A stretch of DNA of 35,892 nucleotides from Octopus bimaculoides. Lineage: Eukaryota. The notes below the pieces were generated by a model, which ran no database searches, was not told where the DNA came from, and was given only the letters and a program-made list of their open reading frames with translations. The DNA is taken from positions 5,603,999-5,639,890 of the forward strand of contig NC_068988.1 of the NCBI RefSeq assembly GCF_001194135.2. The letters run 5' to 3'. The position numbers were made by a program, and so were the translations under genes. Each line of letters opens with the position of its first letter. Within the stretch, counting starts at the first letter, position 1. Positions 1,511 through 27,282 of this stretch are shown one piece after another.

Positions 1511-1955
1511 ATGGCTTTGGAATATTTACCAACGTTCCAAATTTTCTTCCAGATTGGGAATCGTCACATAATATTATCGACAACTATCATTTGGTTTATA
1601 TAAATATTGAAGAATACAAGTCATATTCAATGAGCGATAGTATTCTTAATTCACCCCAGAAGAAAATTAGATAGCTTTCGATTCTGTACAAAGTTTCTCC
1701 TGAATTTAGTATAGAAAGTTGTCACTCGTCTGGTTTGACAAACCGATTTGGTTTCTGTGTCCTCTTCATCTATTTTATTTTTACTATTGAATTAGTACAC
1801 CTTCCGTGGTTTATTCTAACAAATTATTCTATTAAAGGCTCTGCGTTTCTATAAGCGAAAGTTCTGTTTTGTCGGTAAAGGTGTTCACTGTTATGTGTGC
1901 AATTAATTCAATTTGGACTAAGAATGCTACCAATCAGTTTCGGCATAACTACAGA
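1511..1955 (+). pseudogene. GRL/7TMIC variable first exon A, 5' part, pseudogenised
   Basis: Translates as MALEYLPT...INIEEYKS...SGLTNRFGFCVLFIYFIFTIELVHLPWFILTNYS...AK/SSVLSVKVFTVMCAINSIW, colinear with exons C/D. In-frame stops at 1672 and 1852, frameshifts near 1530 and 1860; homology stops near 1955. Confidence 0.85.
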
Positions 1956-1957
1956 GT

Positions 1958-2331
1958 TCTACCACCCAGACTTTGGAAGGTCATAACTTTCAGAAAAATA
2001 AATATTTTTTAATGAAATTTTCTATGCATATTGTATTTATTATGTAGATTCCGAATATACAAAAAGTTTCGGTGAAAGTGTTTTGGAATGGGGGTGGGGG
2101 ACAATTTTCGGAAATTCCAACTGAGTCCACTTAAATTCTTCTTAACTTCCAGGAAAATTAATATTTTTTCGTGAAATTTTCTACAAATATACCTTGATGT
2201 ATGTACATTTCGAACATGTAGGAATTTTGAAGGAAACGTCTGCAGGTTATTTTTGAGAAGCGTTCCCCACTCGGTGGTGTTTCGGAGAAAGTCGTCCATA
2301 ATTGTTTCATTTTTCTCTATTATGTGCGTAT
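1958..2331. mobile_element. Probable DNA transposon/MITE fragment truncating exon A
   Basis: Homology to exon A ends abruptly here. Contains an internal direct repeat (aaataaatattttttaatgaaattttcta ~1997 vs aaattaatattttttcgtgaaattttcta ~2156) and an aggtcataacttt motif. Runs into a gap; family not identified. Confidence 0.4.
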
Positions 2332-3225
2332 NNNNNNNNNNNNNNNNNNNNNNNNNNNNNNNNNNNNNNNNNNNNNNNNNNNNNNNNNNNNNNNNNNNNN
2401 NNNNNNNNNNNNNNNNNNNNNNNNNNNNNNNNNNNNNNNNNNNNNNNNNNNNNNNNNNNNNNNNNNNNNNNNNNNNNNNNNNNNNNNNNNNNNNNNNNNN
2501 NNNNNNNNNNNNNNNNNNNNNNNNNNNNNNNNNNNNNNNNNNNNNNNNNNNNNNNNNNNNNNNNNNNNNNNNNNNNNNNNNNNNNNNNNNNNNNNNNNNN
2601 NNNNNNNNNNNNNNNNNNNNNNNNNNNNNNNNNNNNNNNNNNNNNNNNNNNNNNNNNNNNNNNNNNNNNNNNNNNNNNNNNNNNNNNNNNNNNNNNNNNN
2701 NNNNNNNNNNNNNNNNNNNNNNNNNNNNNNNNNNNNNNNNNNNNNNNNNNNNNNNNNNNNNNNNNNNNNNNNNNNNNNNNNNNNNNNNNNNNNNNNNNNN
2801 NNNNNNNNNNNNNNNNNNNNNNNNNNNNNNNNNNNNNNNNNNNNNNNNNNNNNNNNNNNNNNNNNNNNNNNNNNNNNNNNNNNNNNNNNNNNNNNNNNNN
2901 NNNNNNNNNNNNNNNNNNNNNNNNNNNNNNNNNNNNNNNNNNNNNNNNNNNNNNNNNNNNNNNNNNNNNNNNNNNNNNNNNNNNNNNNNNNNNNNNNNNN
3001 NNNNNNNNNNNNNNNNNNNNNNNNNNNNNNNNNNNNNNNNNNNNNNNNNNNNNNNNNNNNNNNNNNNNNNNNNNNNNNNNNNNNNNNNNNNNNNNNNNNN
3101 NNNNNNNNNNNNNNNNNNNNNNNNNNNNNNNNNNNNNNNNNNNNNNNNNNNNNNNNNNNNNNNNNNNNNNNNNNNNNNNNNNNNNNNNNNNNNNNNNNNN
3201 NNNNNNNNNNNNNNNNNNNNNNNNN

Positions 3226-3326
3226 AGAGAGAGAGAGAGAGAGAGAGAAAGAGAGAGAGATAGAAAGAGAGAGAGAGAGAGAGAGAGAGAGAGAGAGAGA
3301 TAGAAAGAGAGAGAGAGAGAGAGAAA
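3226..3326. repeat. (GA)n microsatellite directly upstream of exon B
   Basis: Visible GA/GATA repeat at the gap edge. Confidence 0.95.
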
Positions 3327-3372
3327 GATTAGCAAGGAACTATAATCATAAGAAACAGAAGTCTTTAACAGC

Positions 3373-24815: not shown

Positions 24816-25330
24816 AAGAAGCCCGTCGTATGTATATATATATATATATGTGTGTGTGTGTGTGTGTGTGTGTGTGTGTCTGTGTTTGTCCCGCCAACAT
24901 CGCTTGACAGCTGATGCTGGTGTGTTTACGTCCCTGTAACTTAGCGGTTCGGCAAAAGACACCGATAGAATAAGTACTAGGCGGTAATGCGGCAAACTGG
25001 CAGAAACGTTAGTATGCCGGACGAATTGCTTAGCGGTTTTTCGTCTGTCTTTACGTTCCGAGTTCAAATACTGCCGAGGTCAACTTTGCCTTTCATCCTT
25101 TCGGGGTCGATAAATTAAGTACCAGTTACGCACTGGAGTTGAGGTAATCGACTTAATCCTTTTGTCTGTCCTTGTTTGTCCCCTCCATGTTTTGCCTCTT
25201 GTGGGCGATAGAGAAATAAGAATAAGTACTAGGCTTATAAAGAATAAGTCCTGGGGTCGACTTGCTCGACTAAATGCAGTGCTCCAGCATGGCCACAGTC
25301 AAATGACTGAAACAAGTAAAAGAATAAAAG
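24816..25330 (+). mobile_element. SINE body and tail (core, microsatellite, 3' tail) interrupted by a second SINE
   Basis: gaagcccgtcg-(TA)(TG)n-tgtctgtgtttgtccc...gatagaataagtactagg / cttataaagaataagtcctggggtcg...gaaacaagtaaaagaataaaaga. A decayed equivalent lies at 26826-27040. Confidence 0.8.
24982..25218 (+). mobile_element. Nested SINE (7609 family) with ~15-bp TSD
   Basis: agaataagtactagg at 24967-24981 and 25219-25233. Body is near-identical to 7609-7839. Confidence 0.9.
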
Positions 25331-26613
25331 AATACATATATACCCCCCATATATATATATATATATATATATATATGTGTGTGTGTGTGTGTGTGTCTAT
25401 GCATATACAGATAAATATGTATGTATATACACATGAATATATGTATATATATGTATATATGTATATGATGTACTGACTTTCCGGTTCTGTGTTTTCTGTA
25501 TGTATTGTGTGATATCCCTTCCTATATACACCAGTGGCAGGGAATTTGATCTGCTAGACAGGAGTCCTCTCCTTAGTCTTCTTGATTGAAGGATAAGTGT
25601 ACGTACTCATCTATTAGTACTAGACATGTAATTTAAATCAACTTGCTTTATATAATCACATTGAGAATATTTATGTATGTGTATGAGTGTGTGTGTGTGT
25701 GTGTGTGTGTGTTTGTGTGTGTGTGTGTGTTACAAGGTAAACTTACGTCGTAACACATGTCGGATGCAGTGCCACACCAATATAATCTACCGCAAATATT
25801 GCATAATATTTCACATGAAACCAAATCCCGGCAATGGTGTTAGAAGTGTAGCGGCACCGAGACAATGCTAACTAATTACAAAGTCATTCTAATTCCATTC
25901 TTCATTATGATAATTGCTATAAATCCACATATACATACAGATATATTTATAAATTTCGAAGTGCTATGCGGGAATATATTCTTAAGAAATTACTTTACGA
26001 AAATATTATTGAAAAACGAAGTGTTATTTGAAGTTGAGAGTAAACTAATGCAACGAAGACAGCTTAGTTGTAGAATAGTACTAATAATAATCAGATGCGG
26101 ATCTTTGAAAACTCCTAATTATGTGTTTAGAAATTAGTCCATATGCCATAGACAAACTGCAATATCATTTCTCTTATTCCAGTGCTGGTGTCTGCTGACA
26201 ACTCTGCTAATGCTTCTCACGTGTTTTACCTTATTTAAAATTTGATCTCTATCTCTCACCTCCCCTCTTTCTGTCTGTCTGTCTGTCTGTCTGTCTCTCT
26301 CTTCAGCTTTACGCTTTCTAAATTACTTTCATAATTTCATAACAAACACTTTCAGAATGTCCGATTGCTCAAATAGCCAATTTTCTGAGTCCTTAATATA
26401 AATAATCATGTTGTAAAGCTCATAACACAGAAAAACAGGTATGGCGGTAAGGTTAAACTAGTCGCTTTTGAATTACGTACTTTCGAATTCAAACACTCTG
26501 TCCTGTGAGTGTGTTTGGTAGCTTGAAACTATATAGAACCCCTCCGTATATACATACATACATACATACATACAGATATATATATATATATATATATATA
26601 TATATATATATAA

Positions 26614-27040
26614 GCGCAGGAGTGGCTGTGTGGTAAGTAGCTTGCTTACCAACCACATGGTTCCGGGTGCAGTCCCACTGCGTGACACTTTGAGCAAGTG
26701 ACTTCTACTATAGCCTCGGGTCGACCAAAACCTTTTGAGTGGTTTTGGTAGAGGGAAACTGAAAGAAGCCTGTATATGTTTGTGTGTGTGCGTACTTGCG
26801 TGCGTATGTGTATGTTTGTATGTATGTATGTATGTATGTATGTACGTATGTATGTCATTGACTGTCTACCGTTGAACACACGGTATTGGCTTACTACGTA
26901 CTCATAAATTTTTGCGGTTAGTCAAAGGCCCAGCAATAAGATCAGTACCCGGCTTGGAAAATTAGTATTACAATTGAGTTGTTCGTTTAAAACCTTCGTG
27001 GTGTCTCTCCTGAAAGGCAACAGTTCCGTAACAAATAAAA
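26614..27040 (+). mobile_element. tRNA-derived SINE (head, microsatellite, decayed tail)
   Basis: gcgcaggagtggctgtgtggtaagtagcttgcttaccaaccacatggttccgggtgcagtccc...gggaaactgaaagaagcc. Confidence 0.85.
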
Positions 27041-27228
27041 GATATGATGTATAAAAGTTATTACTACAAAAGCGTCATGTTCTATATATAAATGTTTAAA
27101 ATAAACGTGAATAACCTAACTTGTATAAAAGCATTATACAAATAGTGTCACATTTATATAAATGCAATATATAGACAATTATTAGTCATACAGATCGTTA
27201 ATACACGGTTATATATTATATATTGCAG

Positions 27229-27282
27229 CTCATTGGAAGTATCATCACCTATTCCATAGTGGCGTATCAGACAAGGAGTTAG
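27229..27282 (+). CDS. Shared terminal exon (54 nt with stop): LIGSIITYSIVAYQTRS* (TM7b)
   Basis: Acceptor atattgc-AG|CTC. Carries the TYxxxxxQ signature of the GR/GRL family; same length as the minus-strand paralog 34828-34881. Possible ATTAAA poly(A) signal ~27333. Confidence 0.92.
   Translation, partial: LIGSIITYSIVAYQTRS

Follow-up and report, generated by a model that had tools for sequence, protein, structure and literature searches.

The 35,892-nucleotide stretch of the Octopus bimaculoides genome analysed here (C8:5603999-5639890, + strand, with C8 standing for contig NC_068988.1; hereafter the window) most likely holds the 3' half of one gustatory-receptor-like (GRL) gene of the seven-transmembrane ion-channel superfamily, RefSeq LOC106880487, whose architecture we read as alternative long first exons in tandem sharing one three-exon tail for transmembrane helix 7 (TM7). 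We put the probability of this reading at roughly 0.8. Its core, first exons that run to TM6 and a shared TM7 tail, had been proposed in an initial annotation of the window and is upheld by five lines of evidence: only the spliced products are recognised as members of the family 7tm_7, a single tail is present, the first exons show the marks of selection, RefSeq models join distal first exons to the tail, and gap-free sister loci display the same layout. From these sequence data we infer that the intact first exons of the window (C, D and F) are transcribed and spliced to the tail exons T1-T3.

Architecture of the locus

The window is AT-rich, with many CA/TA microsatellites and gaps (runs of N), and we mapped the 176 kb around it by tblastn together with two profiles, one for the tail and one for the variable (V) first exons. 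Searching the whole genome (2.34 Gb in 145,327 contigs) with exon C returned nine first exons upstream of the window on the same strand, reaching ~40 kb beyond its start. Together with the V-exon profile this delimits an array of 15 exons on one strand across ~60 kb (C8:5564837-5624386), in the order V1, V2, V3, V4, V5, V6, V7, V8, V9, A, B, C, D, E, F, followed by T1-T3 (Table 1). The initial annotation had seen six long exons from position 1511 onwards: six copies do lie in the window, with only C, D and F intact and A, B and E decayed, while the limit of six was mistaken, given the nine further exons upstream. Intact exons make up nine of the 15, six of them upstream of the window (V2, V3, V4, V6, V8 and V9) and three inside it, with five exons decayed (V5, V7, A, B and E) and V1 carrying a single nonsense codon. 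This codon (C8:5565248-5565250) replaces a glutamine codon relative to isoform X2 of the O. sinensis orthologue of the gene, LOC118764605, where the exon is intact; the stop may be a genuine loss, may be polymorphic or may stem from erroneous sequencing.

The intact exons each have their own ATG, encode 345-361 amino acids (aa) that cover the protein up to the cytoplasmic side of TM6 and, in all nine cases, terminate at the same aligned codon with ...G-x-x-x-N-x-x, followed by GTAAGT, GTAAGA or GTAAAT; upstream of the window these donors lie at C8:5567863, 5571597, 5579210, 5587270, 5593913 and 5599405. For C, D and F this common end reads ...GLQ(L/I)N(F/S)(S/K), with the donor sequences GTAAGTAT (C and D) and GTAAATAT (F), all in phase 0: these three exons are intact and end just as had been annotated. 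Exon D is 68% identical to exon C. The introns leading to T1 range among the intact exons from 447 nt (F, without a gap) through 11,156 nt (D) and 14,027 nt (C) up to ~57 kb (V2). An alternative start of exon F at ATG 19318 would give an exon of 357 codons (19318-20388). Homology in exon A is lost before the gap at 2332, and since the residue ranges matched by A and B overlap, these are separate copies and not one exon split by a gap.

Downstream of the array, T1-T3 have AG acceptors, lengths divisible by three and phase 0, with GT donors at T1 and T2, and add 70 aa in total: T1 completes TM6 on its cytoplasmic side and continues through a loop into TM7a, T2 encodes TM7a and the start of TM7b, and T3 encodes TM7b with the family motif TY-x5-Q. 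This tail aligns without indels to 53 family tails, which also confirms the T1-T2-T3 join. From these tails we built the tail profile and scanned in six frames, with genuine tail exons at five regional loci reaching 20-49 bits. The profile agrees with the annotated single downstream set of phase-0 exons on this strand (from 20836, 23834 and 27229). Gaps in the window fall in the A/B interval, the D/E interval and both tail introns (including 23385-23394 and 24086-24815), with none of the exons C, D, F, T1, T2 and T3 overlapping a run of N, and the order T1-T2-T3 is independently confirmed by protein models that read across the gaps (UniProt A0A0L8FXQ7 and XP_052825885.1). The predicted products comprise 431 aa for C or D plus tail and 415 aa for F plus tail from ATG 19354 (427 aa from ATG 19318). 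A T1-like peptide match between T2 and T3 (25775-25819, + strand, HQYNLPQILHNISHE, E = 0.064) has no profile score; it was rejected as a spare exon and is probably due to chance.

Table 1. Exons of the LOC106880487 array and tail, and further O. bimaculoides loci with several first exons on one tail (window positions unless C8 is given).
Feature	Position	Strand	Description
V1	upstream of window	+	most distal array exon; one in-frame stop
V2, V3, V4	upstream of window	+	intact
V5	upstream of window	+	pseudo
V6	upstream of window	+	intact
V7	upstream of window	+	pseudo
V8, V9	upstream of window	+	intact
A	1531-1908	+	pseudo first exon; matches exon C residues 5-133; 3 in-frame stops (1 TAG, 2 TAA)
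B	3403-3793	+	pseudo first exon; matches exon C residues 20-149 in two frames, with a frameshift; stops; cut short
C	5726-6808	+	intact first exon; 1083 nt, 361 codons, ATG to phase-0 donor GTAAGT at 6809
D	8597-9679	+	intact first exon; 1083 nt, 361 codons, donor GTAAGT at 9680
E	16056-16954	+	pseudo first exon; residues 1-297 across several frames; 11 stops
F	19354-20388	+	intact proximal first exon; 345 codons, donor GTAAAT at 20389
T1	20836-20904	+	shared tail exon; 69 nt, 23 aa AHQLADHIYAMPLHDLSHEAIVK; phase 0 both sides; tail profile 24.5 bits
T2	23834-23923	+	shared tail exon; 90 nt, 30 aa LSFFLHRLTSEQIGISIGGCFVINPASVLT; donor GT at 23924; tail profile 47.2 bits
T3	27229-27282	+	shared tail exon; 54 nt, 17 aa + TAG LIGSIITYSIVAYQTRS; tail profile 21.5 bits
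beta locus		+	2 first exons, one tail
delta locus	C8:5642691-5662717	-	3 first exons (1 intact, 2 frameshifted)
delta T2	35198-35287	-	tail exon of convergent neighbour GRL locus
delta T3	34828-34881	-	tail exon of convergent neighbour GRL locus
delta T1	C8:5641328-5641399	-	beyond window end
zeta locus		-	3 intact first exons
eta locus		-	5 first exons, 4 intact
lambda locus		+	2 first exons, placed from search matches only

Protein family and fold

Against Pfam 7tm_7 (PF08395, cut-off 26.6 bits) the joined products score 42.6 bits (C plus tail) and 40.7 bits (F plus tail), while the first exons alone match no Pfam family: the tail is thus needed for the family to be recognised. The TM7 motif in T3 reads TYSIVAYQT as compared to TYhhhhhQF in the family; among 24 family tails T, Y and Q hardly vary, and the final F is either T or F in the octopus subfamilies. 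The closest proteins come from molluscs, and several of these carry the name gustatory receptor. All three introns (V/T1, T1/T2 and T2/T3) are in phase 0, and three phase-0 introns near the 3' end are characteristic of animal GRLs (PMC7746228).

The AlphaFold (AF2) model of O. sinensis isoform X1 is of low confidence, with a predicted local distance difference test (pLDDT) score of 61.7 and a predicted TM-score (pTM) of 0.56. A Foldseek comparison of this model with the PDB nevertheless returned cryo-EM structures of insect odorant receptors (OR), Orco or gustatory receptors (GR) for all of the top 22 matches (TM 0.5-0.66), followed by noise; phmmer with an O. sinensis isoform gave no match among PDB sequences. 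The junction of variable exon and T1 (residues 351/352 of the model) falls within the cytoplasmic end of the TM6 helix, with TM7a (369-394) derived from T1/T2 and TM7b (399-420) from T2/T3, so that the structural mapping of the initial annotation (boundary at TM6, TM7a and TM7b in the tail) appears roughly right at this level of confidence. In OR and GR structures TM7a forms the anchor and TM7b the pore-lining helix.

Existing gene models

For O. sinensis LOC118764605, the array of which lies at about 82.93-83.05 Mb of CM016866.1, RefSeq describes two isoforms (X1, 421 aa; X2, 403 aa) that differ over their first 350 and 333 residues and end in an identical tail, 68 of whose 70 residues match the window tail. 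Their first exons are orthologous to V6 (X1, 68%) and V1 (X2, 77%), and the gene ranges cover 105 kb and >115 kb. In case of O. bimaculoides, XP_052825885.1 (LOC106880487 isoform X1) joins V1 to T1-T3 over a 59-kb intron that contains all other variable exons; it begins at the first Met after the V1 stop and is shortened to 273 aa as a result of this nonsense codon. The existing RefSeq models of the locus cover 1-2 exons only, and older or run-level annotations split it into a tail-only protein (A0A0L8FXQ7_OCTBM from the 2015 annotation, 60 aa, identical to the tail) and first-exon-only read-through open reading frames (ORFs) ending in ...VSI....

Choice of the first exon and alternative explanations

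Transcription most likely starts upstream of one variable exon, as in insect Gr28b and Gr39a, and each first exon would possess its own promoter. The donor of the chosen exon would then be the only one preceded by the cap and, as the variable exons downstream have no acceptors, it would be spliced to T1, the first acceptor encountered. The locus would in this way yield at least nine receptors (415-432 aa) that differ in their sensing portions but have the same TM7: by analogy with OR/GR structures, the variable portion would include the ligand pocket, and TM7a and TM7b from T1-T3 would correspond to anchor and pore-lining helix. We likewise infer a channel or ligand function of the products; that isoforms co-assemble combinatorially is speculation. 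As possible promoter signals, TATAAA is found 84-124 nt upstream of the ATG in five of the nine intact exons (V3, V4, V6, V8 and V9; background 1.5 per kb), followed 27-34 nt downstream by a CA site resembling an initiator (Inr) in V3, V4 and V6, and located at -121 and -124 in V8 and V9. Among the nine upstream regions no k-mer other than TATAAAT is shared by more than six, and this comparison revealed no conserved promoter element.

Several points weigh against a shared tail served by separate promoters. TATAAA was not found upstream of C, D or F, and V3, V4 and V6 are paralogues, making the TATA signal partly non-independent. Seventeen gaps with ~11.5 kb of N in total interrupt the array; the longest (3330 N, C8:5600669-5603998) directly precedes the window, the others reach at most 1176 N each, and the spacing of the three D-E gaps (10306-11278, 11648-12114 and 13702-14232) would in principle allow a compact tail to lie completely within them. 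The RefSeq models that connect distal exons to the tail are automated, with the evidence behind them not visible, and the O. sinensis array is covered here by its gene models. Finally, a 105-aa query across the junction of variable exon and tail returned only the tail-only model from 5.8 billion clusters, and an exact look-up of the nine predicted full-length isoforms in a collection of 15 billion proteins returned none.

A first alternative accepts the shared tail and assigns the choice of exon to mutually exclusive splicing from a common leader, as in Dscam, which we regard as unlikely. In favour of such a leader, a pyrimidine tract with CAG is present 55-84 nt upstream of the ATG in V2, V6 and V9; these three of nine exons are, however, no enrichment over the 20% of random 150-nt windows that contain acceptor-like sites, and this background level fits the use of the cap-proximal donor from alternative promoters better than a shared leader. 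The placement of TATAAA described above, ahead of the CA site in V3, V4 and V6 and at -121 and -124 in V8 and V9, points in the same direction, as does the observation that the starts of the X1 and X2 ranges in O. sinensis are separated by no less than 10 kb (although these may be coding-sequence ranges). Insect GR loci of this layout have separate promoters, and no shared leader exon was identified for the octopus array.

It is very improbable that the array represents tandem complete genes whose near-identical tails are hidden in gaps or have been collapsed by the short-read assembler. The array is full of gaps, assemblers of this type tend to drop near-identical repeated tails, and the D-E interval with its three gaps could hold three small exons; against this, the V1-V2, V7-V8, B-C and C-D intervals are gap-free and contain no tail. 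The C-D interval (6809-8596) had been singled out from the start as having no gap and no tail-like exon, and tblastn and the 53-sequence tail profile leave that statement intact: being gap-free and tail-free, it forces exon C at least to borrow a downstream tail, and were a tail hidden in the D-E gaps, exon C would still share that one. Even the tightest tail sets seen in the family need 2.3 kb or more, a length that only the 3330-N gap could nominally accommodate. No second tail was detected in the assembled sequence of the + strand between 5564000 and 5624800 (best profile score 6.3 bits), the T1-T3 tail type has a single copy in the whole genome with unplaced contigs included, and in both species RefSeq models connect the tail with the most distal exon.

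Sister loci bear on the same question. Our genome-wide census of tails and first exons, based on single-protein searches and local profiles of fetched regions, places the layout at no fewer than five octopus loci, with ~25 intact receptor-coding exons on ~10 tails (Table 1); at the eta locus, RefSeq LOC106880719 X2 splices the most distal exon to the tail. Gap-free examples (0 N) come from three other assemblies. In O. sinensis, the beta orthologue has two intact first exons and one tail, with the gene model using the distal exon, and LOC118764608 has five intact first exons and one fragment on one tail, with the model skipping three intact exons. In Sepia pharaonis (CAHIKZ030002108.1), two first exons precede one tail and are represented by two gene calls with a common 3' end, and in Haliotis rubra (QXJH01000625.1) three intact first exons with the same end codon and GT donors precede one tail. 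An identity of 88% between two of the Haliotis first exons suggests that a first exon was duplicated recently, and on its own. These gap-free loci remove an assembly artefact as the explanation at the level of the family and, on the evidence here, the layout appears to be common in molluscs. Whether alternative first exons on one TM7 tail are a general, possibly ancestral protostome, route of GR/GRL diversification through an ancient phase-0 intron before TM7 is a proposal to which we would give even odds.

Just as improbable as an array of complete genes with hidden tails is the explanation that only F plus tail works and that the upstream exons are tail-less relics of partial duplications that are not productively spliced. 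Consistent with relics, the junction query and the isoform look-up yielded no transcripts for C or D, five or six array exons are plainly dead (3-11 stops or frameshifts are found in each of A, B, E, V5 and V7, as opposed to their intact neighbours), and an orphan intact first exon without a tail (exon G, see below) lies next door. The nine intact ORFs of 345-361 codons nevertheless persist at dS 0.36-1.27 with ratios of nonsynonymous to synonymous substitution rates (dN/dS) of 0.35-0.61 between paralogues; in the case of C and D, dN/dS is 0.47 at dS 0.39 (bootstrap 0.33-0.63). Exon C moreover has an intact orthologue in another octopod (contig L028), syntenic on both flanks and recovered from five sequencing runs that differ by single-nucleotide polymorphisms (SNPs); the exon is intact in five individuals. 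The two exons are 81.0% identical with one 3-nt indel in 963 nt, compared to 70-78% identity and 32 and 83 gap columns in the flanks, they yield a dN/dS of 0.37 (bootstrap 0.27-0.53), and the donor GTAAGTATT is retained. The presence of a consensus donor at one common codon in all intact exons, next to dead neighbours that show fast unconstrained decay, and the splicing of the V6 and V1 orthologues to the tail in the O. sinensis RefSeq models are also difficult to reconcile with relics. Judged from these substitution patterns, purifying selection acts on the intact exons, next to which other copies have decayed: exons that are kept open in this way and lack TM7 must take it from T1-T3, its only source.

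Comparison with known systems

Drosophila Gr28b, Gr39a and Gr23a and Blattella BgerGr60a-m belong to the same superfamily (7tm_7) as the octopus locus, and these alternatively spliced insect GR loci share with it three phase-0 3' introns and a tail that is the most conserved region (TM7). The exon arrangement of loci of the Gr28b/Gr39a/BgerGr60 type is found here: long first exons in tandem on the same strand, each with its own ATG and with a homologous donor codon and phase, upstream of a single set of short C-terminal exons (as far as the array with its ~11.5 kb of N can be read). The octopus locus differs in its host, a mollusc, and in its greater length, with 15 exons over 60 kb and introns of up to 59 kb, whereas transcript support is a feature of the insect loci, the octopus locus being known from sequence and gene models. 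The largest insect case, Gr60a-m, has 13 isoforms, some of them pseudogenic (PMC6175461). The non-arthropod animal GRLs (Robertson 2015; Saina et al. 2015; Benton et al. 2020, PMC7746228) have in common with the octopus locus their protein family, the motif in TM7 and the conserved introns at the 3' end. The clustered protocadherins and UGT1A of vertebrates follow the same logic of large variable first exons, presumably with their own promoters, and constant exons, but this is an analogy only: the proteins are unrelated, and no element resembling the conserved sequence element (CSE) of protocadherins was found in octopus, only TATAAA in five of nine exons.

The locus thus extends the known alternatively spliced GR kind taxonomically to molluscs. 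The initial suggestion that such a layout was undescribed outside arthropods holds for the literature searched (Robertson 2015 not covered), in which no description for non-arthropod GR-like genes was found; it needs qualifying in that automated RefSeq isoform models already embody the layout, which is widespread in molluscs. Octopus chemosensation is discussed mainly via chemotactile receptors related to nicotinic receptors and via G protein-coupled receptors (GPCRs), and to our knowledge the GR-like channels of octopus have received little attention so far. If each intact first exon gives a receptor, one gene would correspond to at least nine channels and the GRL repertoire would be severalfold above gene counts. 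Automated annotation performs poorly here, producing tail-only, first-exon-only read-through and truncated 273-aa models, and repertoire comparisons built on such models will therefore be wrong. The occurrence of the layout in cephalopods, a gastropod and insects raises the question of whether it was inherited or evolved repeatedly via an ancestral phase-0 intron before TM7. Loci that combine variable sensing parts with an invariant TM7 (pore and anchor) also provide a natural experiment on which channel regions need to match for assembly.

Neighbouring features and further observations

Exon G (window 30999-31997, + strand) is an intact first exon of a distant subfamily (identity to C, D and F ~20-24%). 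It starts with an ATG of its own and ends in ...TLYSK before a GT donor, and no tail follows on its strand before the end of the window. In the whole genome just one tail of the G type is present, at C8:5825445-5827967; it is separated from exon G by 190 kb and preceded by two more first exons of this type. Either exon G is orphaned, or it acts as a very distal alternative exon, or the assembly is at fault here. A further possibility, a misoriented contig that would let G splice to the tail on the minus strand (34828-35287), was rejected: this tail is of another subfamily, the first exons of which lie on the minus strand beyond the window.

At C8:9852171-9860891 two near-identical tail sets are found in inverted orientation, eta (- strand) and theta (+ strand), with no plus-strand first exons near theta: this pair is either an inverted duplication or an assembly mis-join. 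Comparison of the eta-type RefSeq isoforms P0063, P0064 and P0065 with P0007 reveals that some use an alternative acceptor inside T1, which drops 14 conserved residues (VHSIT.SIH.MQFQ), with the sequence continuing at DIK(P/Q)EV; the pattern resembles evidence derived from transcripts, or else an artefact of annotation.

Rfam and tRNA (ARAGORN) scans of the window found nothing. An interspersed repeat is present between C and D (window ~7600-7830, + strand), which we take to be an octopus element resembling a short interspersed nuclear element (SINE), with no tRNA detected in it by ARAGORN and no match in Rfam. Exon C is immediately preceded by a long (CA)n run (~5400-5590), and a (TG)n run comes after exon G.

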